Below are positions 2,463-20,612 of a stretch of 64,000 nucleotides of DNA, one piece after another. How positions within the stretch are numbered: the first letter of the stretch is position 1; each line of letters starts with the position of its first letter. A model generated the notes under the pieces. The model made no database searches. It was not told the DNA's origin and worked only from the letters and a program-made list of their open reading frames with translations. The position numbers and the translations under genes were made by a program. Where the stretch lies: sequence record NC_061447.1, one strand, 5' to 3'.

Positions 2463-3160
2463 AGAACTTCTCCTCTCTCGTCAGTGACGTAAGGAATGCC
2501 GTTGCCTTTGCCCAATCCATGTCGCAAAGCCCAAACGGTGTCGGCATTCTCCTGCACGAACACTAACCCTTTTGTTTCTGGCTCACTCGAACCTTCTTCA
2601 AGTGCTGTCACACGCGCTGTAAGAAGCTGTGCATCAGACTGAATGGTACGAATGGCGCTAAGGTTAGAGTTAACGCGCTGGTTCATGTTGTTGAACATGG
2701 TGAAGAACGAGTTGTTCATCGCCGTGCGAACGCCGTCCGTATAGGACTTAGGAATCAGTTCGTCGTTATCGAAGGTTGTTACACCTGTGCGCACAAGAAC
2801 TTTACCGGTAAGACGTCCACCACTTGCGCTGATAATCTGAGGAGCAGGCAAATCAGCCTCGTCCCAGACTTGAACAGTGGTCATCACCGTATTGTAGTCG
2901 GTCTCTTCCTGCCACGTATTCCTATAAGGAGCCGTAGCAGTTTTGGACTTACGACGCATCACTTTTTTATAGTTAGCGTTCGTACCGTCCGCGATAATCC
3001 AGAGACCGTTCAGTGGGAAAACGCGAGTGTAAGGTTCGGCGAATGCTAAGATGATTGTTACATCAGCACTTACCTTATACACAATATCGTTCGACGCTGA
3101 CAGACCTTGCTGTTGTGCAAGACTAATCAACGTGTCCACGTAGTTAGTCAACTGGCTCAT
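2336..3160 (-). CDS. Virion structural protein with central coiled-coil and C-terminal small beta domain
   Basis: C-terminal WALRHGLG..PYVTDERG..LWPETV...DNVLLLTFLEPVSGVA matches the W-x-I-x-HNLG...F..P.SG.A module common in phage tail and fibre proteins. Confidence 0.7.
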   Translation of the reverse strand: MSQLTNYVDTLISLAQQQGLSASNDIVYKVSADVTIILAFAEPYTRVFPLNGLWIIADGTNANYKKVMRRKSKTATAPYRNTWQEETDYNTVMTTVQVWDEADLPAPQIISASGGRLTGKVLVRTGVTTFDNDELIPKSYTDGVRTAMNNSFFTMFNNMNQRVNSNLSAIRTIQSDAQLLTARVTALEEGSSEPETKGLVFVQENADTVWALRHGLGKGNGIPYVTDERGEVLWPETVTPAEADPDNVLLLTFLEPVSGVAQLLYTPKAETNLQ

Positions 3161-3620
3161 CCGAGACTCCTAACGATTGAAGAATAATAGAACTTTTATC
3201 GGAGAAGGCCTTAGCGATCAGTTTAGCAGCAGCCTTATCGACAACGAGTGTGCTGATTTTCCCTTTGGTGTTGCACACAATAGTCTGCGGAGCAAACTGC
3301 GCACAAGCCAAAGCAAATAGCAGATGGTTGCCTAAGTCACCCGAGATACTAATCTCAACGCCAAGCTCAGGCACTAAGATGTTCTGGTTGATTTCGGCAA
3401 CGAACTGCGCCAGCACCACAGGGTCGATATCAGGAGGCGCTGTATCATATCCTTCGACAAGATCAATCTGACCAGTAGAAGGGTCAAACGCGAATGCAGA
3501 TGGGTCGCCAATGATTCGGCCGAATAGCTCGTCACTAACTTCAATGCAATCGTCGTCTGTCTTCTCGCGCACACGACCAATAATTGCATTCGTGGCGCGA
3601 TTGATTTTGATTATCGGCAT
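3144..3620 (-). CDS. Putative tail-fibre assembly/chaperone-like protein
   Basis: Follows a fibre gene, about 158 aa, AGGTGA RBS before ATG 3620. Function inferred from position and size only. Confidence 0.5.
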   Translation of the reverse strand: MPIIKINRATNAIIGRVREKTDDDCIEVSDELFGRIIGDPSAFAFDPSTGQIDLVEGYDTAPPDIDPVVLAQFVAEINQNILVPELGVEISISGDLGNHLLFALACAQFAPQTIVCNTKGKISTLVVDKAAAKLIAKAFSDKSSIILQSLGVSDEPVD

Positions 3621-3621
3621 A

Positions 3622-4443
3622 TTAATCACCTACCGCAGTATACCAGAAGTCCCAGCCAGCAGTATTGGTGCCAGTAGACTTGATGGTGAAGCCGCCTAAC
3701 AGGGCGTTCTCATTCATCGCGCTCGTACCGTCCAGATTGTAGAGCTGGTAGGTCCTTGCTTGGTTCAGAGCAGCGTTAACGAACGTGATGTTAATGCTGA
3801 TACAACGGTTGATGAATGCCGTGTTAAACACAACGTGGATGGTATCAGTAGTTGACGCGTTCACGACTCGACCCATGTTCTGAGTAAAGCCTGTGTTCAT
3901 GTCACGGTTACTACCAATCCATGCGTTCGGTATTACAGCGCCGGTGTTTGGGTTGAGCGCCTGAGACACACGATACTCGTCAATAGCAGCATCGCGTCCC
4001 GGGCTACCAGTAGGACCAGTTGCACCAGTAGGACCCACAGCGCCAGTGTTACCAGTAGCGCCGACAGGTCCTGTGTTACCAGTAGGTCCGTTACGGCCAC
4101 GAGGGCCACGAGGTCCCGGGCAACCATCTTCACCATCACGACCATCACGACCATCAGCACCAGGGAGACCGCGTAAGCCGTCTTTACCCTGTTTACCTTC
4201 GCGCCCTGATTTAAGCTGATCAGCAGTAGGCAGTCCGATAACACTAGACTGACTACCATCAGGCCAGATGACTGTTAGCGTACCTGTAGTTGTGTCAAAC
4301 TCAACACCCTGAGAGCCGGGAATCTTTGCAGCCTCTGTTGGGTCGATAAACGCAACAGCGGTCGCCGTCTTCTTACCCAACACTTTACCAACAGGCGAAG
4401 CACCGCCGTCGATAAGTGCAGGGTTAATCTTCGTAAGAGACAT
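3622..4443 (-). CDS. Collagen-like fibre protein with C-terminal gp53-like/lectin-type tip domain
   Basis: Uninterrupted Gly-X-Y run. The C-terminus HVVFNTAFINRCISINIT...GFTI...WYTAVGD is typical of phage fibre tip domains. Confidence 0.8.
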   Translation of the reverse strand: MSLTKINPALIDGGASPVGKVLGKKTATAVAFIDPTEAAKIPGSQGVEFDTTTGTLTVIWPDGSQSSVIGLPTADQLKSGREGKQGKDGLRGLPGADGRDGRDGEDGCPGPRGPRGRNGPTGNTGPVGATGNTGAVGPTGATGPTGSPGRDAAIDEYRVSQALNPNTGAVIPNAWIGSNRDMNTGFTQNMGRVVNASTTDTIHVVFNTAFINRCISINITFVNAALNQARTYQLYNLDGTSAMNENALLGGFTIKSTGTNTAGWDFWYTAVGD

Positions 4444-4454
4444 GGGCTAAACTC

Positions 4455-4658
4455 CTAACCAGTCAGTGTTGTCCAATCTGGTTGACCCGATTGTCCAGCC
4501 TCAGGATTTTTAACTTTGGTGTTGTTGATTGTCATGCGAACCCAACGCACACTTCCATCTGAATCCTGATACCGAACCTTCGTTCCACCATACGCTAAAT
4601 TAGCTACCCATCTGTCTCTGCTTGGGTCTTTGAATGCTAAACGTGCATAAGCTGGCAT
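4455..4658 (-). CDS. Small virion-associated protein (67 aa)
   Basis: GGAGAG RBS, fills the gap between neighbours, and resembles the N-terminal 55 aa of 7589..9613. Confidence 0.7.
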   Translation of the reverse strand: MPAYARLAFKDPSRDRWVANLAYGGTKVRYQDSDGSVRWVRMTINNTKVKNPEAGQSGQPDWTTLTG

Positions 4659-4667
4659 ACGCTCTCC

Positions 4668-7547
4668 TTAACCATCAATCTCGTCAGGCTCCCAGCACAG
4701 AATAGGACGGCGCCATACTTGGAACACACCGATAGGGTTAGCGCGTCCGTCGTCAATGAAGCAATCCATTGTGCGTCCTCCTGAGTTTCCGCTTTGCATC
4801 AACGTCACAAGTCCTTCTGTCCAGGAAGCACGGCCACCAGAGTCAGCCTCAAACAATCCTTCCCACACCATATCGAAAGCGCCTTTCCACGCATTGAAGT
4901 GGTGAGAAGAATAAGCACCATCACCGACAGAGCACAGCACCATGTACTGGTAATCTTTCACACACGGGATGTTGTAGTTATTCCCGCGAGGAACCGATGT
5001 GCCGTTGTTGTTGAAGATACATTCCCAACCAGTACGGTCAGCAGCGCCAGTAGTTAAGAACAGAGGACGACGAATGATCATCATAATCCCGTTCTCACCG
5101 CCATTGTTGCTAGACTTCTCGCAGTACGCATTGCAGCGCAGCGAACGGTCTACTGTGAACGTGGTTGAGTTCGAGAAGTCACGGCAGTAGTAGTTCGATC
5201 CCCACTTAGGCAAATACTCTGCTGGTGGTACGAAGAAGTGACGCTCTGCAAGTTCAATCTCGCCGTAGCGGTCATACGCAAACACGATGTACTCATAGCC
5301 GGCCTCAATCTGGATGTTGTGGCCTTGAGTACCGACGCCATTCCATTTCCAGACAACCTGCCAGTCGTTCGAATCGCGTGAGGCTTCTTCTGTAATGAGC
5401 TGATACTTACGCTCATAGATGTGCCACACTTTCCCTTCTTCCGTTGTTTGGATATACAACGAGTTCGGGTCATTAATGTTCCCGTTCTCAGTACCGCAGT
5501 AAATCTTATGCGATGCACCAGCAGAGTTGTAGATAGTGCCTGACCCGATTGAACCAAACATATCCCAGTTCATCATCAGGTGAGAGGTACACATTTCGTT
5601 CTGGCCGCTACCGTCCGACGTTGTAATCAGATACTCACATAGGTCCTTGAACGGATATTTAACGTAGCGGTTGTTGGCGCGGTTAACAACGTGAACCCAA
5701 TCGTGAGACTGAATCTTAGGCACAGGGAAGCATGGGTTAGTCACAGACACAACGAAGGTCTTTGACTCATACATAGGCAGCTTCTTGAAACGGTTATCCC
5801 TAATCGTAACGTTGTGCTGCATCCCCATTGTCGAGGCACCGTCCTGAGAGCCAAGCACTTTGTAGTAGCGCAGGTGACTACTCTTGGTGTTCTCAAACAA
5901 ACCGTTGAGCGCCATGCTCATGTTGCCTTCGCGGTCTGTACCTGTAACGTAAGGGAAACCATTCGTGTCGAAGTCATAGCCGACAGAGAAGTAGCTGTCA
6001 GTATCAGACGACTTGGCGCCACGATACATTTCATTCCACGCGTTACCTTCACCAATACCAGGCTCACCAAACAGAGAGTATGCAGCGCGATACACATACT
6101 GCGAACCTGCGTACACACGACGCGATGCACCAATGCGGTACATGGCTTGAGGTAGCCCACCCTGCAAACGGTTAACGTCGGCCGTATCGTAAGACACAAC
6201 GTAGACGTAATGGTCAGAGCCAATTGAGTTCAAGAAAGCCGCACAGGCAGCAGCGTTCGCAACACCTGGGTTAGTACCTTCGGCAGATGCGTGAATGTCA
6301 AATGTACGACGCTCAACCAACGCGCGGTCTGACTTACGAATCTTATAGACGTTCCAGCCACGAGTGTCGGTGTAGCGAGTACCGTTAAAGATTGTGTAGC
6401 CTGTATCGCCTGTGTCGAGATAACGCTGGTAGCCTACGACGTGAGAGAAGATTAGGCTACGTGCTGCAAGTGACTGCGCGTTTTCGTTTGACCAAGAGAC
6501 TGTAACATCACCTGCTGCCATACGCGCTGCCCAATCATCGGGCTTCTGCGGATATGTAGTAACATCGAAGTCTACCTGATACGCAGAGCCTGGTTCGACG
6601 CAGCACTTGTCACGATAGATAAGAGGTGGGTCAATGACAACATCGTCAGAGATATCAACTTGTCCGCAGTAGAACTGGCGCCATGTACCTGGTTGACCAC
6701 CAATAGTGCCTGGGCCTGCTTGCGTAGCTCCTGTGAACTGATACGCAGCAGATAGCTCGAAGTTGATTTGGTTATGCAACTGAGCGACGTTGGTCCAAGA
6801 TACATGATTGCCGAACGCGTTAATGCTCTTGTTCTTTGCTGCAACGGTAGAAGCAACATACGCCTGACCGTTACTGCGAATGCCGAGTGGGTTAAAGATC
6901 GCGTTGAAGTTTACGTTGCCTTCATACGGACCTTTCTGCAACACAATCAGGCTGACGCCGTTTCGGTGGGCCTCACTCAGAGCACTAAGCATTTGGGCAG
7001 GCATACTCTGGTTGGGCGCAGACAGCAGAAGCATCACGCAACTGAACTGCTTGAAATACTTGTACGTACCGTCATAACCATACGCACCAGCGTTAATCTC
7101 TTGCCAGCTATGAGCAAGCATGTCGAGAGGGATGCGCTGCATATACGCAACGAGTTGTCCCCACGACTCCATTGCAGTGTCATCATTGACAGGTGCAAGG
7201 TCTGATATGACAAGCATGGTGCTGCCATATGTGATGTTCGAGTTGTAGCCGCGTTGTGTCAACAGGTGACGCAGCACACCCATGTTGTTAATGCTCTTAT
7301 TGCGGTAGTTACCGAGCCAACCGTAGTTAGCATCAACAAGAGGACTACCGTCGCGGATGAATCGACCATTCATGTAAACAGAGCCGAAGCCGCATACGTA
7401 TGAAAGAGCATGACCATCAACAACAAAAGAGGTGAAGCGTGAGCTATCAACTGCCATAGCGTCTACTGCGGTAATAGAGCCATCGCCAGGACTACCGCTA
7501 AATACAGGCGTAATGCCTCGCGCATACAAGCAGCTTTGTTGCAGCAT
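4668..7547 (-). CDS. Large adhesin-like virion protein containing an ILEI/PANDER (GG-type lectin) domain
   Basis: RGWNVYKI...RRTFDI...AFLNSI...VYVVSYD...MYRIGA...YRAAYSLFG..G matches the ILEI/PANDER pattern. 959 aa in the fibre cluster. Confidence 0.7.
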   Translation of the reverse strand: MLQQSCLYARGITPVFSGSPGDGSITAVDAMAVDSSRFTSFVVDGHALSYVCGFGSVYMNGRFIRDGSPLVDANYGWLGNYRNKSINNMGVLRHLLTQRGYNSNITYGSTMLVISDLAPVNDDTAMESWGQLVAYMQRIPLDMLAHSWQEINAGAYGYDGTYKYFKQFSCVMLLLSAPNQSMPAQMLSALSEAHRNGVSLIVLQKGPYEGNVNFNAIFNPLGIRSNGQAYVASTVAAKNKSINAFGNHVSWTNVAQLHNQINFELSAAYQFTGATQAGPGTIGGQPGTWRQFYCGQVDISDDVVIDPPLIYRDKCCVEPGSAYQVDFDVTTYPQKPDDWAARMAAGDVTVSWSNENAQSLAARSLIFSHVVGYQRYLDTGDTGYTIFNGTRYTDTRGWNVYKIRKSDRALVERRTFDIHASAEGTNPGVANAAACAAFLNSIGSDHYVYVVSYDTADVNRLQGGLPQAMYRIGASRRVYAGSQYVYRAAYSLFGEPGIGEGNAWNEMYRGAKSSDTDSYFSVGYDFDTNGFPYVTGTDREGNMSMALNGLFENTKSSHLRYYKVLGSQDGASTMGMQHNVTIRDNRFKKLPMYESKTFVVSVTNPCFPVPKIQSHDWVHVVNRANNRYVKYPFKDLCEYLITTSDGSGQNEMCTSHLMMNWDMFGSIGSGTIYNSAGASHKIYCGTENGNINDPNSLYIQTTEEGKVWHIYERKYQLITEEASRDSNDWQVVWKWNGVGTQGHNIQIEAGYEYIVFAYDRYGEIELAERHFFVPPAEYLPKWGSNYYCRDFSNSTTFTVDRSLRCNAYCEKSSNNGGENGIMMIIRRPLFLTTGAADRTGWECIFNNNGTSVPRGNNYNIPCVKDYQYMVLCSVGDGAYSSHHFNAWKGAFDMVWEGLFEADSGGRASWTEGLVTLMQSGNSGGRTMDCFIDDGRANPIGVFQVWRRPILCWEPDEIDG

Positions 7548-7569
7548 GTTATGTCCTTAGATCGAGAAG

Positions 7570-7585
7570 AGGGGCCGAAGCCCCT
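7570..7585 (-). terminator. cUUCGg hairpin (weak terminator or RNA-stability element)
   Basis: AGGGGC-TTCG-GCCCCT on the minus strand, followed only by CTTCTC (poor U-tract), intergenic. Confidence 0.45.
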
Positions 7586-7588
7586 ATG

Positions 7589-9613
7589 TTATCCAAATAC
7601 TACGCTGGTGATAGCGAGATAATCGAGGTCGTTCGAGTCACCACGGTCACCGCCACCTTGAACACGCAACCAAATTTCTTGGCCAACAGGTATGTTCACA
7701 TCGAACGTGAAATACTGATACGTTCCGCTGTTGTTTGCAGGATTCTTAGCAGCGCCTTCACCAGCAGTGCGCTCGTAGATCTCAATTGTGTGCCAGCCAC
7801 CATTCTTACCGTCGTACACCCATGCGAAAGTGATTTGCTTAATTGGCTTAGTGAAGAAGTTACCCCACTTGAACCAACCATTCACGCCACCCCAGATGTT
7901 CATGTAGTTACCGTCGCGTGTCCACACTTGAGAAGCATTAGGAGAACCTGTACCGCGTCCACCTGTCTGTTCCCATGCGTTTGGTTGCCACGGCAGAACG
8001 TCTGAATCTGGCGGCTGATCGTTACCACCTTCGATTGTTACGCAACGATAAGGAACGGTGAAGTCACTCACGTTAATCTTAGGAGGCTGAATCGGACAGT
8101 ACACGAAGTATGACCAATCACATCCGATAGGCGCTGTCGCTCGGACAGTGATGTTAGAGCGCAGCACATGCTCAGGGTACTTCCAAAATTCGAGTGTGCC
8201 AGTCTTGCCCGCAGCAACGATAGAGGTATCGAGCACGTTCATGTCTTGGTCAAACACTTCGAACTTGGTGTCGAACGAGTTCGCAACACAGACAACAAGC
8301 TCTGCACGAATGTCCGATTGAGTTCCTAACGCAAAATTATCTTCTGTGGTTGGATGACCGGCAGAGTACACGCTGTAGCTCTGGCAAGGGTGCATGTATT
8401 CACGCGCACCACGTTCACCTGGACAGTACAGACTATAGAAGCAACTCGCAAGCGAGGCAGCGTTACCAAAGTCCTTACTGACTACGCGCACCATGATATC
8501 ACATGCAACACCTTGAGGGTCAAAGTAGAAATACAGATAACCCTCACCAGTACGAGCGTCAAGCGTCGTAGCGATACGGCGACCAGACTGATAGACCTCA
8601 ATGAAGTCGAATGTTTCCCACGAGGTGTAGTCGAGATACATCCAGCCTGCTGTCCAGCCGATGAAGTGATAGTATTCGAAAGCGTTAGCATTCTGAATAC
8701 GTTCAGCGATAGGCCAAACAGTTGCGTGACACGGCGCAGGGAAGATTGGGCTACCGATGTAGTCTGGATGAATGACGTCAGGGAAATTGATAACGTCATA
8801 CGATGCCTGACTATCGAGAGCTAATCCGCCACGGTCAGAAGGTGCGGCAAGGCGCGGAGGATATACTTCTAAGCTCCAGCCATAACCCTGCGTTGTACGC
8901 ACACGCACCATGATACGCATATCAGCAGCGTCAGGGTCGAACTGGAATTTGATGCGCGAGCGACCGGCCAGCTTACCACACGTCGATGCAACACGCACAC
9001 CCATGTGGTACACGTCAACACTAGCACCAGCTGGTGCATAGGACGCGATCATCAGCTCCACGTACCCTTCGATTGCTGGCATTGCATAATACGTCTCGGT
9101 GATAACAGCACCACGCCCATGAACAGAAGCGTAAGGTACGTTAGGGTTAGCATAAGTGCCTAGCCCTGCGCGAGAAGCAACACCAGTAGGGTCGTATGAT
9201 TCGATGGTCTTGATGCCGGGTCTATTGATAGATCGACCAGTAGGAGGAGAGAAAGAGTTAATAAGACCGAAGCCAGTGCGACCAGCATCAGGTAAATCAA
9301 ACCCTGCAGGATAGCCTTTGAGGATATCGTATTTCTCACGGCCACCACTCCCTATTCCGTTACCAGAACCTTTGGTAGTTGACGTTGGACCGCCACCACA
9401 TGCGCCCGTCTCAAGGTTTGAACACGGGTCATCATACGTAGGGTCGAAAGAGTCGTTAATTGGTAACCAACTCTTTCCCCACTGATTACGCACACTGAAT
9501 TTGTCTGGGCTTAATGGCGTCCAGTCTCCTGCATGTGTGCGTATGAACATGGGCGTGTCCACGCAGTCAAGCCAACCGTTATTCGCAGCATTACGAACGC
9601 GAAAACGTGACAT
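7589..9613 (-). CDS. Virion structural protein with three tandem beta-sandwich repeats
   Basis: 674 aa. Three roughly 100-aa units with ...I.VRV...Y(P/C)P endings, located in the fibre cluster. Confidence 0.7.
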   Translation of the reverse strand: MSRFRVRNAANNGWLDCVDTPMFIRTHAGDWTPLSPDKFSVRNQWGKSWLPINDSFDPTYDDPCSNLETGACGGGPTSTTKGSGNGIGSGGREKYDILKGYPAGFDLPDAGRTGFGLINSFSPPTGRSINRPGIKTIESYDPTGVASRAGLGTYANPNVPYASVHGRGAVITETYYAMPAIEGYVELMIASYAPAGASVDVYHMGVRVASTCGKLAGRSRIKFQFDPDAADMRIMVRVRTTQGYGWSLEVYPPRLAAPSDRGGLALDSQASYDVINFPDVIHPDYIGSPIFPAPCHATVWPIAERIQNANAFEYYHFIGWTAGWMYLDYTSWETFDFIEVYQSGRRIATTLDARTGEGYLYFYFDPQGVACDIMVRVVSKDFGNAASLASCFYSLYCPGERGAREYMHPCQSYSVYSAGHPTTEDNFALGTQSDIRAELVVCVANSFDTKFEVFDQDMNVLDTSIVAAGKTGTLEFWKYPEHVLRSNITVRATAPIGCDWSYFVYCPIQPPKINVSDFTVPYRCVTIEGGNDQPPDSDVLPWQPNAWEQTGGRGTGSPNASQVWTRDGNYMNIWGGVNGWFKWGNFFTKPIKQITFAWVYDGKNGGWHTIEIYERTAGEGAAKNPANNSGTYQYFTFDVNIPVGQEIWLRVQGGGDRGDSNDLDYLAITSVVFG

Positions 9614-9622
9614 GCTCTCTCC

Positions 9623-10114
9623 TTACGGCCTTACCCAGATGGCGCCCGGTGCAATCTCATTATCAATGGCTGGGTCGGTGTCTTGTACGAAGACCATTAC
9701 AGTACCAGGATTACCCGGTGCACCAGTAGGTCCAGTAGGGCCTGTAGGACCAGCAGGACCGCGATTACCTACATAGCCTTGCTTACCTTGTTGACCATCA
9801 GAGCCACGAGGACCAGGACAGCCATCAGTACCGCGACGACCATCGCTACCCATGAGACCATCAATACCATCACGGCCAGCAGGACCAACGCCACCAGCAG
9901 GACCGTAGCCGATGCTGTGTATTGTAGGCAGACCAGAAATCTGGAGCTTGCCGATATTAGGGATGTTAATCGCCAGTAGACCTGTAACTGCATCGAATGA
10001 GCCGCTGAGTTGGCTATCATCCTGAACAGTATCAACTGTGATTCCCCCTTCGGTCGCTACGACAGGACCAGAAGCATTGGCCTTAACGAGCGATATATCA
10101 ACTTTTTCTACCAC
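9623..10114 (-). CDS. Collagen-like protein (163 aa)
   Basis: GTG start with AGGAGG RBS, Gly-X-Y run, C-terminal VFVQDTDP...GAIWVRP motif. Confidence 0.85.
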   Translation of the reverse strand: MVEKVDISLVKANASGPVVATEGGITVDTVQDDSQLSGSFDAVTGLLAINIPNIGKLQISGLPTIHSIGYGPAGGVGPAGRDGIDGLMGSDGRRGTDGCPGPRGSDGQQGKQGYVGNRGPAGPTGPTGPTGAPGNPGTVMVFVQDTDPAIDNEIAPGAIWVRP

Positions 10115-10123
10115 GTTGCCTCC

Positions 10124-10756
10124 TTATGGCCATGTGATATTCTGATCTTTGGTAGGGTCCACCCAGATTGTGCCAGCAGCAACGTTCCCTGGGTTAGTAG
10201 CACTGACGATGATAGACAGGCGTCCAGCAGGACCTGCAGGGCCGGTAGGACCAGTCGGTCCAGTAGAACCAGTAGCGCCTGTAGGACCAGTACCGCCACG
10301 AGGGCCAGTAGGACCAGTAGGACCCATAGGGCCTGTTCTACCATCTGGGCCAGTAGGACCAACAGGGCCTGGTAATCCGTCACGGCCATCTGGTCCTGGG
10401 ATACCCTGCTCACCATCTGGACCCACAGGACCAGTACACCCAGGCTCACCTGGATTACCATCGCGGCCATCTCGTCCGTCTTTACCATCAGCACCTGTCT
10501 CACCTCTACCGCCCTGACGACCTTCAGGTATATCAGCAGCAGTAGGGAAGCCGCCTACCTTAACTGTCTGCCCGTTAGCAAACTTGAGAGTAAGAATACC
10601 CGAAGTTGCATCGAACGACGAATCGGAAGTTACCTCTGAGGGAACCTGTTCGTCGCTAGGGTCTATCGAGAGAACCCCAGACTGAGCACGAATCGCAGTA
10701 GGCGTAGACGAAGAACCAGCCTGAATGAGACCGGTCTTAACTTTAATCAGACTCAT
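10124..10756 (-). CDS. Collagen-like protein (210 aa)
   Basis: Long Gly-X-Y run rich in GPT, C-terminal IIVSATNP...GTIWVDP motif, TAATG coupling to the upstream gene. Confidence 0.85.
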
Positions 10757-12195
10757 TACTTTTTCTCCGCTTTCGCAACAATATCCGTGTTGTGTGCGAG
10801 CACATCACCAACGAAATAACAATCAAATGGGTCAACGTCGATATCAACAGTCTTCACTTGATTATCTACGCGGCGGAACTCATACACTGACACAGGACCC
10901 TTACGACCAAGCACGGTATTCCCTGGCTGCACATCACGCGCAGGAATATAACGCCACACGCTATCGTCATATACAAGCACTGGATGTTCGTGTGTGAACT
11001 TCTGTCCGTTGATAACGAAGTAGTGATCTTCTTCGCCGTACTTCAAACCGACAACAGTAGCATTCACCAGATTACCTTTGAGACTTGGCGAAGACCACTG
11101 ACGGAAGTTCTTAGGCTGATTAGAGAAACTCAGCAGGCTATCACCTACACGTAAGTCCTCGGCAGCTTTAGGTCCTGTAATTGTTTCGACAACAGAACCA
11201 AACACAATACAGCCAGACGTTGAGCTTGTTGGGTTACGTGCAACAACTGTTAGCGCAGAACTCACAGTAACAGTAGGACGTGACGCTTGGCCCAGGTCAG
11301 TAACTACGCAACGGATTGTGCCTTTGATTGTACGATCAGCACCAAGTCCGAGACGCAGATAGAAGTTAACAATACACGTTGAGGTATCAGTAGCGCCAAG
11401 CGTTACGCCCTCAGTAGTTGTGATAGACCATTGATACTTATATGGACCTACACCACCACGCGCATTGACAGGAAGGTATGCAAGCGAAGTAAATACATCA
11501 GAGCCTTGCACTGCACGTTGACCTACCATGTACAGGTTAGACACTGACGCAGCAAGAGGCGTTATAGTAGGCAGAGGAGGTGCTGGCGTAACGTTTGCTG
11601 TAGGGTACAACCAAACGAACACACGACCATCTGTAGGCTGCGTGTTAGACTGAACAGCAGTTGTAATAGGCGCTGGACCAGTAGGCCCTGTAGCACCCGA
11701 GATGCAGCTTGCTCCAGTAGCGCCACGAGGACCGATGTTGCCAGTAGGACCAGGAGGACCGTCTGGGCCCGTAGGACCGTCTGGACCTTGACGCCCAGTA
11801 TCACCAGGAGGACCGTCTTCACCATCACGTCCTGGGTCACCAACAGGACCAGTCTTACCTTTAGAGCCAGGACCACCTTCGCAGCCCTGTCTGCCTGTTT
11901 CACCATCTCGACCATCACGTCCGTCACGGCCAGGAGCACCTGGAGCGCCTCGACGCCCAGGTTTCCCTTCACCGAACATAGCAATAGTAGGAAGTCCGGG
12001 GACGTTCACTACTTCCCCGTTCTTCTTGATGAACACCAACACGCCTGTCTTGCTGTTAAACCTTACGCTTGCGATCTGAGTATTCGTCGCTAAGTCCGTA
12101 GACTCAAACTCGACGCTACCATCAACACCGACCAGCGATTTACCTTCATCGTTAGCCGTTGTTTCGATTTGCGAAAGTTTTAACTGTGTTGTCAT
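10756..12195 (-). CDS. Collagen-like fibre protein with Ig-like domain and C-terminal Hint (intein-like) domain
   Basis: Gly-X-Y run, then [10 protein letters not shown] Ig-like domain. Hint blocks: G/CIVFGSVV (A), FTHEHP (B), VDIDVD (F), LAHN/T (G); Hint spans 10789..11211. Confidence 0.85.
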
Positions 12196-14531
12196 TTCGG
12201 TTCAACCTTAATGCACAAGTTACCTGACAGCTTCGAACCGTAGCTTGTAATCTGCGCGTTAACGATACGCACCTTAGCAACGATATCAATGAAGCCTTGA
12301 GGTTGGTTTTCTATCAGCACCGTGAACATCTGCGTCAGGCTAACGTTTGAATACGCAATCACTTCTGTCAGACTCGCATCAGAAGTAACAACGTTAAAGC
12401 CAGCACTGCCTGTGCCTTTAAGGCCACGCCCATATTCAGCTTCGGATGTACCAGGCACCTTGAACGACAGAACATATTCGAGATGCTCTTTACCGCTGGT
12501 GGCAGCAAAGCCAGGACCGAGTTGACACTGGAAGTCGGCGACACACGTAAGCATGATGCCTTTCTTGAACTCGATGCGCTGCTGAATAACCAGCTCTTCC
12601 GAATCGTCCGCATTCTGCTGAATGTTGTACATGTTGCGTGGGTCAGCTTCTTCGGCGAGAGCCTGAGTATTACGAATTGTAATCTCTGGCCACTTGCCTG
12701 TAATCTGAATGCCCTCACCCTGAATGATTTCAGGTGCAGCGATAGGCACGTCGATAGGAGGCAGACCTTGACGTTTGAACATGTAGCCAGTCGGCGTAGG
12801 GATAGCATCAATGATAACGCCATCGACCGAACTGTCTTTCGAGCCTACTGCCATAACGTTCTCAAAGATTGTGATCTCAATGAGTGTGTCGGCAGGAATA
12901 GGCGACAACGTTTTCAGCACATTGCCCGCTACTGTGAAGTCCTGCGTGTGTACTGTCAGGCCACTCATGGCCATAACGCAGTGCGACTTGTTCAGCGGAG
13001 TAGTTGGCAGAACAAATGTATCAGCATCATAAGGCAGGCGATACTGAGCAACACGAATACGAGTAGACCAGTTGGCGCGTTCTTCATAGCGAGCTACATA
13101 GAATGTGTACTTCTGACCTGACGGGATTGCTTCGGTTAACGTTACGCTGTTACCATTCGTGAGTTTATACACGGTGGTAGGCTGCCACGTTGAACCAACG
13201 ACACAGAACACCATGTCAACGCTATCAATCGGTTTGTTGCCGAGTTTAAACAGCGCAGTCTGTCCGTCACCCACACCTTCGTATGTCTCAAACAGAACAA
13301 CGTGACCTTGAGAAGGCTCAACGCGGAACTGACGCATATCGAGTTGCATACGTTGTTCAGGATAAGACGAAAGCAGAAGCTGGTCATCAACAACACTGTA
13401 TGCAGTACGCGGCTGGAGAACACCTGACGTGCCAAGCAACAGGTCAGTTGAGCTATCGAGAATCTCAGATAGCGTGTAGCGCAGCTTATCAGGCGTTGCT
13501 GTAGTCACAACAGAACTGAATAACAGTTTGCCTGGAGGAACAAACAGCGTACCAGTTGTCTGACGAGTACCACCAGCAACAGGTCCCCAATACGGCTGCA
13601 AGTCTTTGCCTCTGTACAATGCCCACGCTTCTGGTACATCGTTATTCAGCGGCCACGGAATGCCAGCAGACGGAGTTGTTGGGTTAGTGATGCGTCGCCA
13701 CACGGCAATAGTTGTCTGTGCGCTAACGAATGGAATCGCGCTGTCCATGTTGACCAGTTGACCATTCGTGTATTTGAAGTGACGACACGCACCAGCGCCT
13801 GTACCAGAGATTGTCTGAATCAGAACAACCTCGTTAGCCTTCAACACTGAGGACAGCGAAGCAATCTTGAACGTGTTTGCGTTGATGAATCCTGCGGCAG
13901 TAATCTGTCCGCTGAACACACGGTCATGCTCACTGAAAGCCCAATAGTATGAGCCTTGTCCATAGCGATATGCAGTACCTGGAGAGCGTGTGCCGTCAGA
14001 GTTAACGTGCATATCAAGAACCGATACGGCATTGAACACGTTATCGCTCAAGCTCGGTAAGTTCTGGAGCGTTGCTACACTCGGTATGGATGTGTAGTCA
14101 GCCATTTTCACAGCAAGAATCTTTTGGATGTCCTGCTGAATATGTACGAGAAGGCTAACGCGGTTGATAGAGTTCGGTACGGCGATGATAGGCTCTTGCA
14201 GAACAACGTGACCAAAAGGTCGGTTGTCAGAAAGCATGATCAACAGCTCACCAACTCGTTTCAGTGCTTCACCTGCAACGTAGTTGACTTTAATATCAAA
14301 GATAAAGCGGGCACTGTTCTCGGTAAGAACCTGAACATATGACAATGCGCCCGACGCAAGCTCGCTGCCAAGTAACTGCTCTGGAACCACAGACGGGTTA
14401 GAGCCAACAAAGTCACCTGCTTTAAACGACACTGGTTGAATAGCAAGTCCACCAGCGTTAGCGTTCGCAACGGCCTGTTCTCCCTGAGGCGTTAGACGCA
14501 ATGCGTCAACGTAGATAGATTCAGTGGCCAT
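12192..14531 (-). CDS. Proximal tail fibre / tail-collar fibre protein
   Basis: N-terminus [16 protein letters not shown]...FKAGD resembles the P2 gpH / tail-collar fibre N-terminal domain. Three internal GDG.T..F.L...P-type repeats. AAGGAG RBS before ATG 14531. Confidence 0.7.
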
Positions 14532-14560
14532 CAAAGAACTCCTTGGGTTTTAACTCTTAT

Positions 14561-14616: not shown

Positions 14617-17600
14617 TTATTGATAGCGAACTGTGATGACTGAGGAGCCGAATGCACGGGCGTTGGTGCGATAGATCAAGACGTTTTCTGTCAGGTTATC
14701 GTACACAATCTTACCTACAATTGGTCCCTTCTTACCGTTGTCTCCAGTTACTGGCCACTGAGCACCATCGAAGCCTTGCCACCCTTTGTTTACGTTGCCT
14801 GTACCGTCTGCGGCTGCTGCAAACACAGCGTTACCGTATGACTGTCTGACAACGAAGTAACCGTATTCGTCCTGTTTGGTAGACAACACGAACTGGCCAC
14901 CTGTCTTAGAACGTAAACGTGTAGGCAGTTGAGCAAGCGCGATACTCACACCTGTGATACCGAAAGGTGCAACACCGAAGCGTGGATAAGATGACATGGC
15001 TTTCATGAAGTGCGTCTGCGTAAGCGTCTGCTGTCCTTCAATGTAGATAGCCTTGACACCGAAGTCGGTATCGTTAAGCAACAGGCCTATGGTCAATCGT
15101 CCAGTCTGAGAGTTGATAGAGATGCCTTGAACATCAACCACGTCGCCCTTACTGTTAGTGACTTGCCATAAACACTTGGAGCTAACATCTTCTTTCACGA
15201 ACGTGCCAGTACGGCCGAGCAATGCGTTCATCTGCATTGAACTATCGTCACGCACATTCGTATATCCACCTACTGACAGGTCTTGTGGGAAACCGATGCC
15301 TGGGCAAGTGATTTCCTGAACGAGACTGATTTCAGTACGCTGCTCGGTGATGATACATTCCACTTTAACTTTCTGCGGGTCTTTCGATGCAGGGAAGCGG
15401 AAGGTACCGTCTTGGGCCAACGTAAAGCCACTGACAGACTCGACTATGTTCCACTTGAACTTAACTGAGTTCGCGTCAGGCAAACGGCTTGAGCCAGTAG
15501 CACCAGAGCGACGAGTATAGAACGCAGTGAATCGGTAGTCCGTGTTAGGGCTAATGTTGCCTGGAGGATTCTCGATATAGCCGTTGAGAATCGTGTTCTG
15601 CGTGTGAAGCTCAATCGTGCGGAAGCCTGTGATAGTTTCATCAGCAAGCGACTGTGGATTCTGCTTGGTAAACACAGCACGAAGGTTAATCAGGCCGTCA
15701 GACAATTGCGACTGACCAATGAACAGATGACCATTGAGCGGGTCAATCGACACACCATCAACGTTTGTCTCGTCACCGATAGACCAGATAGCGTCTGTGG
15801 TTGTGAGTTCGTCGTCAGGGTCGATGATAACACGCAAGCTGTATGGAACGTACCAGCGTCCATTCTCGTAGCCAATAGTTGGGTTACGATCAGACACATC
15901 CCACACTACATCAGGCCCAACGATACCAATCTGACGGAGATACGTATTCGCCTGCACAAGGAACACAAGCAACGTTTTCTCAATCTGATACTGGTCGCAC
16001 GTAAAGCGAGCACGAATCAGCACAGCACCGTTAACGTTCTGACTTGGTGTGAGTGAACCATCAGCATCAATCTCGGCAACACTGTCTGTGGTAGGAATAA
16101 GCACAGGCGTGTTGTTCGGTCCTGGTTGCGTGTAGTAGTTCTGCACAACAGCCCATTCCGAATCGACTTCAAGGTCAAACGTCTTTGGAGTTTCCTCAGC
16201 ATACGAACCATCGAGAGTACGCATCACGCCACCAGTCTTATACGTGTTGACCAGAGTGTATGACTCGGACAGCACATCAGCACTGATTTGCGTTGCACCT
16301 TCGATACGACTGTTAATGATGTTGTTGATACTCTGCTTAGGCGAAGGTGAAACGATCATATCAATCTTATTGCTCACTCGGAAGAATGAAGCGATAACCT
16401 GAGTATATGTATCGTACTCGTATTTCAGTTTGCCTGTTTGCAGAATAGCACCATCGTAGTAAGACTTGTTCAGGTCAGCGATACTACCAATTGCGTTGAA
16501 CATCGGCAGCTTGCTAACGTCCATTGAGCGGAAGTCTTTGTAGTCGAGAGGAGTACGGCCTTCGATGATTTCAACAACGGCCATGCCACTATAACGACCA
16601 GGCGAGAACTGTAGGAACTTGTACTCGTCTTCTTCCTTCTCTGGCCAGTTGCCTACCCATTCAGCAGCAGTCACATATTCCTGTGTGCCATCAACATAGG
16701 TCGCAAGCAAACGAACAAAGGTACGTGTCTTCTCATACATCGTATCAGGACATTCGATAGTGATACTATTCACCAACGAACGTGTTGGAATGAGTTGCAG
16801 GTCACGGTAGTTTGTGAGATGCGTTCCATCGTACTCATATTCCATAGTGATACGCGCAGAGCCATGCAGGTCACCCTGATAGTAAAGCACATACTCTTTG
16901 GTGCTGCGTCCCATTACAGGGTCATACACCGTGTTATTGCTCAGGCTTACGGTGAGAGTTACCCAACGTGCATAATCAGGATGGTCAGGGTCGAACTGGC
17001 TTGGGTCTTGGCCTTGCTCGACTGCTTGTTGCTGCAATCGAACTGTACGCGCCCTCGCTTCTTCCTTAGCTGAGTCAGATGGAATGTATTCGACCTTAAC
17101 AGCAGCCGCAGCAGCATAGGACAGGCCGTTATTCCACAGACAAACAACAGGCAGCATCAACGTACTACCGCTACTGATTGTTGGGCTTGAGCGCAGGTCT
17201 ACAGACTTCGGAATCATAATCGTATCGTTAACAAGAATGATTCGGTTGAACGTCACTGTGGCGCTACCATCAATGAACGTGAAGTTGAGAGCGTACTTAA
17301 CAGCATCACCGCTAACCAGAGGTGCTTCGAACTCACCTGTCTGCGTATCGACACGAGGCAGAGCGTTAACAGCCGTAGCTGTATCTTCGCTACTGAACCA
17401 CAGACCGTATACCTCAGTGTAAGCAACCACGATCGTTGGGTCACGCGCATCAATCTGTGCCTGAGTAGCAGAGGCCAACACATAGAGAGCCATCGCCTTC
17501 GGTCGAATGATATCACGCTCAACCACAGTCTCTGGAACAACGAGGTCAATCGTAGCCAGTTTGATATCTGGTGCTTTCAGCGTAACCTGCTTGACAGCCT

Positions 17601-19152
17601 CGACAGGAGTGATCTCACCAAACGAAGCATAGATGGAAGTCAGGTAATCACCACGCAACACCTTAGACTTGAGGACGTTCTCAACAATCTCGGTATGTTC
17701 GCTGGTGGTACGCGCTTGTGCAATGCCAAGCTTTGACGTCCCATCATTATAGGTCACAGCATACTTGAGTGCAATCTCCTCGCCTTGAGGTATTTCATCA
17801 TCGACGATGATACGCAACTCAGTAGGCACCAAGTCTTTGACGCTGCGGTTAACATCGAACTCCTGCGTCTTGGACATATCAAACTGTCCTTGATACGCAA
17901 CACTGATATCGATCTTCGAATCTGCATCAACGCTAGGCAACAGGAGAGTCGTGCCGTTGAACGTACCGAGAGATGCCGACAGAGAGATCATGCCGCTATC
18001 GGTTAGTTCTTTTGTTGCGCCAGTAGATAGGTACTTACCGTACACGCGAACTTTGGCACTGGCGTTACCGTACAGCGTAGGGCACTCGATGACCAATTCA
18101 TCAGGGTCGGGCTCAACACCCATTGGGTAAATACGCGACTCCAGTTGCTGCTGAGTGCCGTTGTAGGTCAGAGTCAGGTTGATGACAGAGATGGCCAGCG
18201 GTTCATTAAAGCGAACAGCATTACCATCACGCTCTGCAATCCACGTTGAGTCTTCTACCCACACTTCAACCGTTTCTTCTGTGTTGTCGCTGTAGTTAAC
18301 GATAGCACCGAATGTAGTCCACTCACCACCACGAATAAACTCAGGCTGAATGAATGAGATAGACTTTTGCAACGGTCGACCAACATTGAATCGACGAACA
18401 GGCTCGACAACTACATGAGCACCGAGATACAGTTTGGCGCCAATGTTTATCGCAGCGTAGACGCCCTCTAATACTTCTTCGATGGGTGCCCACTGATAGA
18501 ACAGGTCTGCGATACGTCGATAGAACATTGCCGAACGCGCAGTGTATTGCTGCACATCGTTGTTAACTGGCTCGAAGCCGATGTGGTTGTTAAACCAATC
18601 TTCGGCCTCTTGTTGCGTCATGCCTACTTCTTGCAGTGCATTAACAACATCCTTCTCGGCGTCTTTCGTGATCGTCAGGTCAAGGCCACCATCAATCAGA
18701 TGGGCGTCAACTTCAAGGTTAACCTTGTTAGACTTATACCACGTACCGCCATCTTGAATCAGAGTGCCTAGTGGAGTAGGAACGAACGTCTGATAGTCAG
18801 CGGTGTACAGGCGAGAAGAATCAAACTGACCACCGAGTAACATGCCTACGAACTTAGGCCACTGAGTTGTACCAGATACTTGCTGCCAGTCAGGCAAGCA
18901 GTCGATAACACGTTTCAATGACGGCAAACGATACTGCATCAGGTCACGCGTAATGTTGATGCCGAGCTGGCGAATACTCGCTTCGGCCAGCTCGTCGTTT
19001 GTGTCACCGTTGATGCGACGAAGATTAAGCAGTTGCTCAATGGTCTTGAGGTTCTGCTCGTCGTTGTGTGCATCGAGAATCTCGAACAACTCCGCCCATG
19101 ATTCGTTGGCTTCAAGGAAGTCAATGTTAAAGGCTAGAGTGTTTGATTTCAC
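14617..19152 (-). CDS. Large baseplate wedge protein (P2 gpI / T4 gp7-like N-terminus) with many Ig-like domains
   Basis: Directly follows the gp6/J-like gene. N-terminal QLGINITRDL...LPDWQQVSGT. Repeated I.I.(G/C)PD.(V/M).E...(L/Y)..TY.DG Ig-like units. 1511 aa. Confidence 0.7.
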   Translation of the reverse strand: MKSNTLAFNIDFLEANESWAELFEILDAHNDEQNLKTIEQLLNLRRINGDTNDELAEASIRQLGINITRDLMQYRLPSLKRVIDCLPDWQQVSGTTQWPKFVGMLLGGQFDSSRLYTADYQTFVPTPLGTLIQDGGTWYKSNKVNLEVDAHLIDGGLDLTITKDAEKDVVNALQEVGMTQQEAEDWFNNHIGFEPVNNDVQQYTARSAMFYRRIADLFYQWAPIEEVLEGVYAAINIGAKLYLGAHVVVEPVRRFNVGRPLQKSISFIQPEFIRGGEWTTFGAIVNYSDNTEETVEVWVEDSTWIAERDGNAVRFNEPLAISVINLTLTYNGTQQQLESRIYPMGVEPDPDELVIECPTLYGNASAKVRVYGKYLSTGATKELTDSGMISLSASLGTFNGTTLLLPSVDADSKIDISVAYQGQFDMSKTQEFDVNRSVKDLVPTELRIIVDDEIPQGEEIALKYAVTYNDGTSKLGIAQARTTSEHTEIVENVLKSKVLRGDYLTSIYASFGEITPVEAVKQVTLKAPDIKLATIDLVVPETVVERDIIRPKAMALYVLASATQAQIDARDPTIVVAYTEVYGLWFSSEDTATAVNALPRVDTQTGEFEAPLVSGDAVKYALNFTFIDGSATVTFNRIILVNDTIMIPKSVDLRSSPTISSGSTLMLPVVCLWNNGLSYAAAAAVKVEYIPSDSAKEEARARTVRLQQQAVEQGQDPSQFDPDHPDYARWVTLTVSLSNNTVYDPVMGRSTKEYVLYYQGDLHGSARITMEYEYDGTHLTNYRDLQLIPTRSLVNSITIECPDTMYEKTRTFVRLLATYVDGTQEYVTAAEWVGNWPEKEEDEYKFLQFSPGRYSGMAVVEIIEGRTPLDYKDFRSMDVSKLPMFNAIGSIADLNKSYYDGAILQTGKLKYEYDTYTQVIASFFRVSNKIDMIVSPSPKQSINNIINSRIEGATQISADVLSESYTLVNTYKTGGVMRTLDGSYAEETPKTFDLEVDSEWAVVQNYYTQPGPNNTPVLIPTTDSVAEIDADGSLTPSQNVNGAVLIRARFTCDQYQIEKTLLVFLVQANTYLRQIGIVGPDVVWDVSDRNPTIGYENGRWYVPYSLRVIIDPDDELTTTDAIWSIGDETNVDGVSIDPLNGHLFIGQSQLSDGLINLRAVFTKQNPQSLADETITGFRTIELHTQNTILNGYIENPPGNISPNTDYRFTAFYTRRSGATGSSRLPDANSVKFKWNIVESVSGFTLAQDGTFRFPASKDPQKVKVECIITEQRTEISLVQEITCPGIGFPQDLSVGGYTNVRDDSSMQMNALLGRTGTFVKEDVSSKCLWQVTNSKGDVVDVQGISINSQTGRLTIGLLLNDTDFGVKAIYIEGQQTLTQTHFMKAMSSYPRFGVAPFGITGVSIALAQLPTRLRSKTGGQFVLSTKQDEYGYFVVRQSYGNAVFAAAADGTGNVNKGWQGFDGAQWPVTGDNGKKGPIVGKIVYDNLTENVLIYRTNARAFGSSVITVRYQ

Positions 19153-20612
19153 TGGTTCATCTTCCTTTCACTGTAGGTGATATTGATGCGAAGGTTACGC
19201 AGCGCAACATACTCCAGCACCGTGTTAGGAATGATATCCTGAACAGGACTTTCAATGTTGCAATAGTCCACTTCTGGGCGACGTGCAGGTTGGTCTGGAT
19301 CAGTCCAATCGTATAGCACACGATCTGTAATGTCAGACAGCGCCAGACGTTTACCCAGCAGACCAGGACGACGCTCAAACAGTTTCAGCACCGATTGTTC
19401 GAGAGTTGCCTGATTGGATTCACGCGTACCAGGAGCATCGGCATACAGCGCAACGTTAAGCGTACAGTCAATCTGTAGCTTCTCTGGGTTCCATGATTGA
19501 ACGTCGAGCGGGCTATTGAATTGAGCCAGCCACGTCAGGAACTTGTTCCATTGCGCAGAGCTTGGGTTAGGATTGATACCACCCCAAGTGCTGGTGTTAC
19601 GAGGCAGTACGCACACACGCACGACACCTTGCCACTCACGATCATTAGGAGCAATCTCTGCCTGACCCTGAACAACAACGTCAGCAACATCTGGATAGAG
19701 CGCGATAGCAGCTTTCCATTCGTCGCGGCGAATCAGCTTCTTACGGCTACGGCCTACGATTGGTGCGTAGTTACGATAGTAATCAACAGGCGTTTCATCA
19801 GAGCCGCCTAAGATCGCACTCACTGTCTTACCTTGCAACTGTGGATTAGACAGACACTGCACTTTAAGACCTGTGCTGTCTGTATTACCACTGGCACCGA
19901 TTGACTTGATACCCTGCACACGCAACGTATAACCAGCTGGTGGTTGTGCTCCCCACTGCTCGCCGCCAAACTGAATCTCAACGTCACCTTCATCGGTTGT
20001 TACATCGAGGAAGATCTGCTGGTCAGCGTATGCTTCAAACAGACACTTGGTGAAGCGTTGATACTCAATACGTGTGCCAGTAGGATGTTCGAACCACACA
20101 CGAATATCGTCGGTAAGCTGGAAGTTTTCAGTGCCGAGCTTAATCGACATGTAATCGACAGGCGTAGGAACAATCTGACTGAACGTAAACACTTCACCAA
20201 TAATGAAGTCAACGTTCTTCACTTCGCCTGGTTCCCACTGCGTTACTTCCGCAAGCAGAGCATTGAACGTGCCGATAGTGAATGGTGTGTACTTGTCGTA
20301 GGATTGTTTTACAGAGCTTAGGTTAGCAACTGAGGCAGTAACCGTAGACACTGATTTGCGTCCGATATCCACACCAAGATAACGAGCGTTAGCAAGGATA
20401 GAAGTGTTACGACGAGCGAGTCGGCTGAATGCTTCACGCGCAGCAATCAAGGACGCATAGGCATTCGTTACACCGAGATCACCAAGCGCATCAGCAAGCA
20501 ACGAGGTCAATGAACTAACCTGTGCATCAGTCCAATGGCTGGAGCTGTTAATACGATTCAGGAAGTCTTGTGCAAACTCCTCATGAGTCGTGTAGGTATT
20601 TAGCATGGACAT
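19149..20612 (-). CDS. Baseplate wedge protein, T4 gp6 / P2 gpJ-like
   Basis: REAFSRLARRNTSILANARYLG and GGSDETPVDYYRNYAP...LIRRDEW motifs typical of gp6/baseplate J. Follows the gp25-like gene. Confidence 0.85.
   Translation of the reverse strand: MSMLNTYTTHEEFAQDFLNRINSSSHWTDAQVSSLTSLLADALGDLGVTNAYASLIAAREAFSRLARRNTSILANARYLGVDIGRKSVSTVTASVANLSSVKQSYDKYTPFTIGTFNALLAEVTQWEPGEVKNVDFIIGEVFTFSQIVPTPVDYMSIKLGTENFQLTDDIRVWFEHPTGTRIEYQRFTKCLFEAYADQQIFLDVTTDEGDVEIQFGGEQWGAQPPAGYTLRVQGIKSIGASGNTDSTGLKVQCLSNPQLQGKTVSAILGGSDETPVDYYRNYAPIVGRSRKKLIRRDEWKAAIALYPDVADVVVQGQAEIAPNDREWQGVVRVCVLPRNTSTWGGINPNPSSAQWNKFLTWLAQFNSPLDVQSWNPEKLQIDCTLNVALYADAPGTRESNQATLEQSVLKLFERRPGLLGKRLALSDITDRVLYDWTDPDQPARRPEVDYCNIESPVQDIIPNTVLEYVALRNLRINITYSERKMNQ

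Follow-up and report, generated by a model that had tools for sequence, protein, structure and literature searches.

In Bacillus BclA, the protein of the exosporium nap, and in Streptococcus Scl, an N-terminal anchor is followed by a rod of charged triplets (GKD) and a C-terminal globular domain, and the proteins have a hair-like look. Animal collagens can be locked covalently by cystine knots, in which two adjacent Cys stand at a helix end (type III GPCCG, FACIT junctions). In C1q, A–B and C–C disulfides lie near the N-terminus, and the collagen stems form a bundle before the arms splay; AlphaFold3 models of this bundle are reported to be unreliable (PMC11869133). In Agrobacterium phage Milano, the tailspike gp124 and the short tail fibre gp31 have a single N-proximal Cys per chain of the trimeric fibres (Cys15 and Cys38, respectively), and the three copies bond different Cys of the baseplate wedge and the sheath (PMC10811340). 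Here, we describe four collagen-like proteins, paralogues A to D, encoded in a 64-kb stretch of sequence record NC_061447.1 (64,000 nucleotides, hereafter the window). A collagen-like phage fibre is a known kind of protein; the undescribed detail is an exposed Cys at fixed height, together with an Asp patch, on an N-terminal module (N-module) common to all four. As judged from its conservation, the Cys is clearly under strong selection at the amino acid level in four ancient paralogue lineages, and its probable role is that of a site for covalent cross-linking within the fibre apparatus.

Bases 3000–12500 of the window were 100% identical to Erwinia phage pEa_SNUABM_33, a jumbo myovirus (Alexandravirus) of 263 kb. 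The same bases shared 92% identity with Dickeya phage AD1 and 79–84% with many other Erwinia jumbo phages. The lineage of pEa_SNUABM_33 has been described as 'hairy Myoviridae' by electron microscopy (PMC6143709).

Shared module and conservation of its Cys

A six-frame scan of the window for collagen runs of at least five triplets returned exactly four, with 24 (A), 23 (B), 34 (C) and 29 (D) Gly-X-Y triplets, and a hairpin motif upstream of the runs was matched by just these four open reading frames (ORFs). The order of elements was common to all four: a 25-residue hairpin (F[DN]xx[TS]GxL, 13 residues, G[LF]PT), a 6-residue linker, nine Gly-X-Y triplets and then G-C. Triplet 10 read GCP in A and B, GCT in C and GCE in D, with the Cys at the X position. 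A sequence-only reading of the window had named these four ORFs, their common arrangement and a post-collagen Trp motif in three of the proteins. The ORFs were present on the minus strand and the arrangement was exact in each of them; B, C and D had a clear Trp motif (V..P..[IV]W[VL]xP), of which A carried a degenerate form (...P...PNAWIGS). All four proteins passed the Pfam threshold for the collagen triple-helix repeat (PF01391, 51–55 bits, cut-off 27.2). The features of the four genes were as follows.

3622..4443, minus strand: paralogue A (gp105), 273 residues; N-domain, 24 triplets and beta-sandwich head; Pfam Collagen E 5.6e-15
9623..10114, minus strand: paralogue B (gp109), 163 residues; N-domain, 23 triplets and short C-terminal IWVRP motif, headless
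10124..10756, minus strand: paralogue C (gp110), 210 residues; N-domain, 34 triplets and C-terminal IWVDP motif, headless
10756..12195, minus strand: paralogue D (gp111), 479 residues; N-domain, 29 triplets, Cys for the Gly of triplet 30, then 3 further triplets
within 10756..12195, minus strand: downstream parts of D; VWLYP motif, Ig-like region and intein-like domain
4225..4299 (A), 9923-9997 (B), 10541-10615 (C) and 11986-12060 (D), minus strand: 25-residue hairpin, located by motif match
3991-4206 (A), 9698-9904 (B), 10217-10522 (C) and 11707-11967 (D), minus strand: Gly-X-Y run, located by triplet scan
4120..4122, minus strand: codon of Cys108 in A (TGC), X of triplet 10; invariant in the 26-sequence alignment of A
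9818..9820, minus strand: codon of Cys99 in B (TGT); sole Cys in the protein, kept in 8/8 orthologues
10436..10438, minus strand: codon of Cys107 in C (TGT); sole Cys in the protein
11881..11883, minus strand: codon of Cys105 in D (TGC); kept in 7/8 orthologues, Asn in JA29
4144-4146 (A), 9842-9844 (B), 10460-10462 (C) and 11905-11907 (D), minus strand: near-invariant Asp, Y position of triplet 7, eight residues N-terminal to the Cys

The N-domain comprised ~75 residues ahead of the collagen and ended with G[LF]PT. A profile of this domain returned no credible family in Pfam and no solved relative in the PDB. For paralogue A, a single-sequence AlphaFold2 (AF2) run reached a predicted local distance difference test (pLDDT) score of 40, and a rerun with a 26-sequence alignment was used. 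In the monomer models of A, the hairpin motif formed three short beta-strands and the collagen part had a pLDDT below 50. A similar hairpin (D..G.L.L.L.[ND]G….LG) was found repeated between the collagen segments of unrelated long bacterial collagen-like proteins (P0037, P0069, P0148 and P0173). This suggests that hairpin plus collagen may be a widespread building block without a Pfam model, and the recurrence between collagen segments fits a nucleating or capping role for the helix.

In 38 of 39 orthologues from ten phage genomes, the collagen run had its Cys at index 28, the sole exception being the D protein of JA29, which has Asn. Homologues of C obtained by word search kept it in 30/30 cases; these proteins were all 208–292 residues long with 34 triplets. 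A profile of the module was also searched against 1.84 billion representative proteins. Since generic long collagens dominated the top of the list, family members were chosen by N-domain coverage and then read by eye, which gave ~75 divergent members, ~71 with the Cys in register. In the pooled set, the Cys was present in 170 of 179 distinct family modules (95%) from phage genomes and metagenomes, a biased count, as the filter for this set admitted only hairpins of 25–26 residues with a 6-residue linker and thereby fixed the spacing. Ten profile-positive sequences that had failed a first, stricter pattern were read by eye, and the spacing from linker to Cys was still the same in 10/10; one had a hairpin one residue longer and one had Ala instead of Cys. 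As a background, Cys occupied 16 of 34,902 X and Y positions (0.05%) in 102 unrelated collagen proteins. Searches with protein C for related loci yielded 79 candidates, of which 23 were true relatives and the remainder generic collagens. The combination of N-domain and Cys module was confined to jumbo phages of the Y3/AD1/JA/Lu11/NCTB type and their metagenomic relatives.

Within the first 15 triplets, the Cys column was one of the two non-Gly columns with the lowest entropy; the other was the Asp at Y of triplet 7. Triplets 8–9, which lie between Asp and Cys, were among the most variable. The conserved islands were thus triplets 5–7, an R/K-D-rich patch that includes the Asp, and triplet 10. 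The Cys was encoded by TGT (26) or TGC (13), with switches occurring within orthologue groups. Free variation of the Cys or its spacing among homologues, which the sequence-only reading had set as the outcome that would count against it, was not seen in these modules. Its proposal that the fixed spacing is under selection held in part: the Cys itself is strongly selected at the amino acid level, and support for selection on a spacing shared across paralogues was modest.

In a maximum-likelihood tree of the modules, each triplet-number class was placed on one side of a single branch (support 96/95 for D, 93/80 for B, 67/41 for A and 55/16 for C). Phages of Erwinia, Dickeya, Yersinia and Pseudomonas, as well as NCTB, were represented in every class. 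By this phylogeny, the duplications are old and the four groups predate the split of Erwinia and Pseudomonas phages, and each of the four lineages has retained the Cys independently. Triplet number was fixed within each orthologue group, even between very divergent phages (B 23, C 34, D 29, A 24–25); the A orthologues of Lu11 and HRDY3 had 48–49 triplets. At 0.286 nm per residue, the rods would measure ~20, 21, 28 and 29 nm and fall into two classes of ~20 and ~29 nm.

Among relatives with distinct collagen lengths, ~13 length changes were distal to the Cys and one was proximal (p ~0.05 under a uniform model), which is only suggestive of a special constraint on the proximal segment. The one proximal triplet deletion (P0153) was on a 735-bp contig without neighbours and is possibly an assembly artefact. 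A second conserved Cys of D, Cys164 (11704-11706, minus strand), takes the place of Gly in triplet 30 (GAS-CIS-GAT) and was kept in 7/8 orthologues, including the JA29 protein that has no triplet-10 Cys.

Helix geometry, gene context and the possible role of the Cys

A screw of 2.86 Å and ~103–108° relates equivalent residues between the three chains of a collagen helix. With these general-knowledge helix parameters and radii, equivalent atoms of the three chains were at least 6.2 Å apart at a radius of 3.5 Å and ~8 Å apart at a Cβ-like radius of 5 Å. In an undistorted helix modelled in this way, X-position Cys are too far from each other for an intra-helix disulfide, whether in a homo- or a hetero-trimer. 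The three Cys should therefore face outward, to another molecule. In homotrimeric collagen II, Cys719 apparently forms no disulfide (PMC11580999).

The reading that we favour, tentatively, is that of four ancient homotrimeric collagen fibres in a baseplate/tail-fibre block, with the Cys as an intermolecular link. Each paralogue would most likely be a homotrimer. The shared N-module (the beta-rich domain of ~75 residues, the 6-residue linker and the first 10 triplets) would be the common anchor and nucleation end, whereas the distal rod and C-terminus differ between paralogues and have been swapped during evolution. The fixed marks on this module are the R/K-D-rich patch of triplets 5–7, with its near-invariant Asp, and the Cys at the solvent-exposed X position of triplet 10, and each fibre would show three exposed thiols ~8 nm into the helix. 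After virions exit the reducing cytoplasm, a disulfide would form and join the fibre to a neighbour at equal height, either another such fibre, as in a C1q-like stem or bundle, or a baseplate or tail protein, as in Milano. We infer the trimeric state, the anchoring role, the disulfide chemistry and the partner; the anatomy, conservation, paralogue age and gene context are observed. In a fuller version, which seems doubtful to us, the N-modules of all four trimers would lie side by side and be stitched by disulfides into a single stem, the viral equivalent of the C1q stalk, with its root in the baseplate or tail. From this stem, rods of ~20 and ~29 nm would splay with different or separately encoded tips, and this would be the basis of the 'hairy' or fibrous appendages of Y3-like jumbo phages.

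The gene context bears on possible partners. A to D are all on the minus strand within one co-oriented block. In the order of transcription, the block starts with gp25-like and gp6-like baseplate wedge genes, followed by genes for a 1511-residue tail protein (p1511) and a 780-residue protein (p780) and by D, C and B. After B come genes for proteins of 674 (p674), 959 and 67 residues, then A and finally genes for proteins of 161 and 274 residues. D, C and B are contiguous, and the stop of D overlaps the start of C. The cluster adjoins baseplate genes, since the genes of the 1511-residue tail protein and of a gp6-like wedge protein stand beside it. In RefSeq, A and B are named 'tail fiber protein', and C and D 'virion structural protein'. 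The order of the block was kept in Y3, JA29, Yoloswag, pEa_SNUABM_5 and Yersinia phage fHe-Yen9-02 and, with some changes, in the metagenomic phage NCTB and the Pseudomonas phages Lu11 and HRDY3. It was also seen in metagenome contigs, including a syntenic one with Pfam matches to GPW_gp25 and Baseplate_J_C. The neighbouring genes were as follows.

12192..14534, minus strand: 780-residue conserved protein (p780), directly upstream of D with overlapping stop/start; same baseplate/fibre block
14617..20612, minus strand: 1511-residue tail protein (p1511) and 487-residue gp6-like baseplate wedge protein (p487); annotations 'T4 gp6 like' and 'T4 gp25 like'
4455..9613, minus strand: three genes between B and A, encoding 674, 959 (weak ILEI match) and 67 residues; order kept in relatives

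No Cys of p780 or p1511 was conserved in all orthologues. Neither protein was therefore supported as an obligate disulfide partner, nor was a Milano-type tether to these nearest neighbours; sheath and other baseplate proteins lay outside the comparison. Cys kept throughout were found in p487 (C334, 6/6 orthologues) and in p674 (C410, C506 and C524, 7/7 orthologues).

Losses of the triplet-10 Cys affected individual paralogues. In the JA clade, D alone was without this Cys, and A, B and C retained theirs. In one metagenome contig (L015), both C and D were without it and B retained it. In another (L018, 1838-9981), the B-type protein had Tyr instead, and two D-like proteins of 487 and 2222 residues had Cys at triplets 7 and 10. 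These patterns show, as far as orthologue comparison goes, a link that is not all-or-none, and they do not pinpoint its partners.

Several points weigh against a cross-link of fibres at a selected common height. Among them are the lack of an invariant Cys in p780 and p1511 and the filter bias of the 179-module count. Triplet insertions and deletions are tolerated nowhere in the rods, and the equal register may therefore be inherited rather than selected across paralogues. The number of Cys is odd, with three per trimer. Finally, the losses in single paralogues (JA clade, L015 and L018) imply that the link is dispensable or that its partners are flexible.

Some of these points would equally fit a Cys kept for a role other than a stable disulfide, namely as a free thiol packed on a partner, as a transient folding disulfide or registration aid, as an inter-fibre metal site or as a redox trigger. 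The P22 tailspike offers a precedent with its transient disulfide during trimer folding. Assembly in the reducing cytoplasm, the odd Cys count, the tolerated losses and the lack of an invariant partner Cys in p780 and p1511 are all consistent with such a role, and the invariant Asp eight residues upstream suggests a recognition patch over a bare cross-link. However, other collagens of prokaryotes and phages have hardly any Cys exposed at X positions, and generic packing would not require Cys. Moreover, a single N-proximal fibre Cys in a disulfide network is documented for a phage of a Gram-negative host (PMC10811340). We therefore consider this alternative somewhat unlikely.

In a variant in location, the fibres (above all B and C, which have no head) would not be baseplate fibres but the hairs of the tail sheath, tethered to sheath subunits by the Cys. 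B and C are bare thin rods, and the T4 whisker gene likewise stands beside baseplate and fibre genes. The isolated phages of the family (Y3, AD1, the JA phages and Lu11) belong to the lineage reported as 'hairy Myoviridae' (PMC6143709, PMC13282480), and the hair proteins are named neither for Y3 in PMC13282480 nor for CBB in PMC5259590. Against this location, the genes lie between baseplate wedge genes and genes for large putative receptor-binding proteins, and the rods are only 20–29 nm long, compared with hairs of 119 nm in CBB, a phage of a different lineage in which the baseplate fibres measure ~29 nm (PMC5259590). Also, among the matches listed, the N-module had none in the Rak2-like hairy lineage. 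A literature search, which did not cover the original description of Y3, found no paper that ties collagen to 'hairy Myoviridae'. A position on the sheath is thus unlikely in our view.

The sequence-only reading had proposed disulfide-locked hetero-trimers or bundles; in the hetero-trimers, the four chains would co-assemble and disulfides between aligned Cys would lock their register. The identical register in all four proteins speaks for co-assembly, as do the (near-)overlapping stops and starts of the adjoining D, C and B, which suggest coupled expression, and the nearly equal distance from collagen start to the conserved Trp in C (120 residues) and D (119 residues). Nevertheless, hetero-trimers are very unlikely, because the rods differ in length (23, 24, 29(+4) and 34 triplets, constant within each group), which would not give a regular hetero-trimer, and because X-position Cys of one helix are beyond bonding distance. 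The offset between C and D drifts to 2–3 residues in Lu11 and NCTB, and the lengths of the C and D rods showed almost no variation that could be correlated, the one genome with C at 33 triplets still having D at 29. The D proteins of the JA clade are without the triplet-10 Cys while A, B and C keep theirs. The G-R/K-D triplets are common to all chains, and charge pairs would therefore favour every chain combination equally. That Cys and spacing have no function and were merely inherited from a recent common ancestor, as the homology of the four proteins throughout the module might suggest, is scarcely credible given paralogue groups that predate the Erwinia/Pseudomonas phage split, flanking X and Y positions saturated with change, synonymous codon switching at the Cys and 95% retention over 179 modules.

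C-terminal domains and further genes of the block

The different tips that had been assigned to the four proteins were partly confirmed. B and C are headless, ending ~25 residues past the collagen, and D has the predicted Hint domain. The 'Ig' region of D gave only a weak match to a SprB repeat, and the gp53-like head of A only weak fold matches. The two domains were located as follows.

3625..3993, minus strand: head of A, ~residues 151–273, beta-sandwich, weakly gp53-like; AF2 pLDDT ~85 (residues 150–273)
10789..11211, minus strand: bacterial intein-like (Hint) domain of D, from Cys329 (G|CIVFG) to His-Asn469 (VLAHN|T), then a 10-residue tail

By sequence, full-length A gave only generic collagen matches in the PDB. 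In a Foldseek comparison, the weak matches of the head of A to a fibre tip like that of AP22 gp53 were PDB entry 4mtm (E 0.03, prob 0.97, template modelling score 0.40 on the target, root-mean-square deviation 15.5) and a BFVD protein named 'gp53-like C-terminal domain' (E 0.012, prob 0.99). No structural match to this head at E ≤ 0.001 was found outside its own family in PDB and BFVD. Based on the modelled fold, 'gp53-like/lectin' is a plausible label.

The C-terminus of D matched Pfam PT-HINT (E 9.8e-6, 26.3 bits, just below the cut-off of 27.7) and the bacterial intein-like domain of PDB entry 2lwy (E 6e-6), aligned through its terminal HN. Both hallmarks of a Hint domain, an N-terminal Cys nucleophile and a C-terminal His-Asn, were present, and the domain might self-cleave or splice. 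It was absent from the D orthologues of the JA clade, which are also without the triplet-10 Cys, and from those of Lu11 and HRDY3. A reaction of the triplet-10 Cys with the thioester of the Hint domain was considered and rejected, as Lu11 and HRDY3 have a D without Hint yet keep all four Cys.

Relatives of 133 to 2222 residues carried this N-module ahead of C-termini that differ widely. The proposed 'interchangeable heads' are therefore true as an evolutionary statement, with a constant N-module fused to many C-termini. The 674-, 959- and 67-residue proteins encoded between B and A would be candidate partners of the headless B and C, or candidate tips supplied to them by separate genes. A suspected resemblance of the 67-residue protein to the N-terminus of p674 was not borne out, the comparison giving no similarity.

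The 959-residue protein (4668-7547, minus strand) had a sub-threshold match to an ILEI domain (E 2.3e-5) and five Cys kept in 5/5 orthologues, including the adjacent pair C315-C316. The 274-residue protein (2336-3160, minus strand) is labelled 'HNH endonuclease' in RefSeq and PHROGs, yet it had no Pfam HNH match; its N-terminus matched tail-protein PHROGs, and the annotation of its pEa_SNUABM_5 orthologue is tail fibre protein. 'HNH endonuclease' is probably a misannotation. Two database records stood out among the relatives. Alcaligenes phage Afa-NA1 (PV550095.1, locus L013) is a 78-kb 'complete genome' bearing this jumbo-phage baseplate/fibre block, and Salmonella phage Sen-NF (PV359490.1, hit H75) is a 108-kb record with a match to the N-module of C. 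Both are probably partial or mis-assigned jumbo-phage assemblies.

Comparison with known collagen fibres

Collagen fibres are common in phages, where they usually pass for plain spacers that vary in length. In the proteins described here, rod length is fixed, and a near-invariant exposed Cys and an acidic/basic patch stand at fixed heights in all four paralogues across a wide clade of jumbo phages. This points to a fibre architecture that is defined and probably cross-linked covalently. If true, this would be a rare natural case of a functional Cys within the helix of a prokaryote-type collagen, with relevance to collagen design. Through the four Cys and the four genes, it may be possible to identify the tail appendages of 'hairy' jumbo phages, a group with several candidates for the biocontrol of fire blight and soft rot.

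Unlike the Cys of cystine knots in animal collagens, the Cys described here occurs once per chain, at X of triplet 10 and with 13–24 triplets still to follow, and bonding within the helix is geometrically excluded. BclA, which appeared as a weak collagen match in the PDB sequence search of A, and Scl share with A to D the sequence of anchor segment, charged Gly-X-Y rod and C-terminal domain. In those proteins, however, the number of triplets is highly polymorphic and no conserved in-helix Cys is known, whereas here the number is fixed per orthologue group. Other phage collagen fibres (the minor tail proteins of Cutibacterium phages and mycobacteriophages, the upper fibre gp68 of Staphylococcus phage 80alpha and gp288 of Atu_ph07) likewise have Gly-X-Y rods, and a short beta-hairpin motif often stands before the rod or interrupts it. 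In contrast to A to D, the collagen of Zaka gp7 and Atu_ph07 gp288 is without Cys and has another N-terminal context.

With Milano, the phage described here shares the myovirus morphology, a Gram-negative host and one conserved N-proximal Cys per fibre chain, the trimeric state being presumed in our case. The Milano fibres are not collagen-like and their partner Cys are known, whereas the nearest baseplate proteins of our phage have no invariant Cys. A gC1q head, a jelly-roll of the TNF type, was not found: the four proteins had no Pfam C1q match, and the top PDB matches of the A model included no chain of C1q fold, although one weak BFVD row named 'C1q domain containing protein' was returned (rank 42, E 0.092, prob 0.08). 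C1q also differs in that its Cys are in an N-terminal non-collagen segment; in A to D, the Cys stands within the Gly-X-Y repeat, the helix follows a beta-rich N-domain of 75 residues, and rod lengths differ between paralogues. What the four proteins have in common with C1q and the other defence collagens (collectins, adiponectin) is the principle of paralogous collagen chains with heads, in which an N-proximal Cys is in register between chains.

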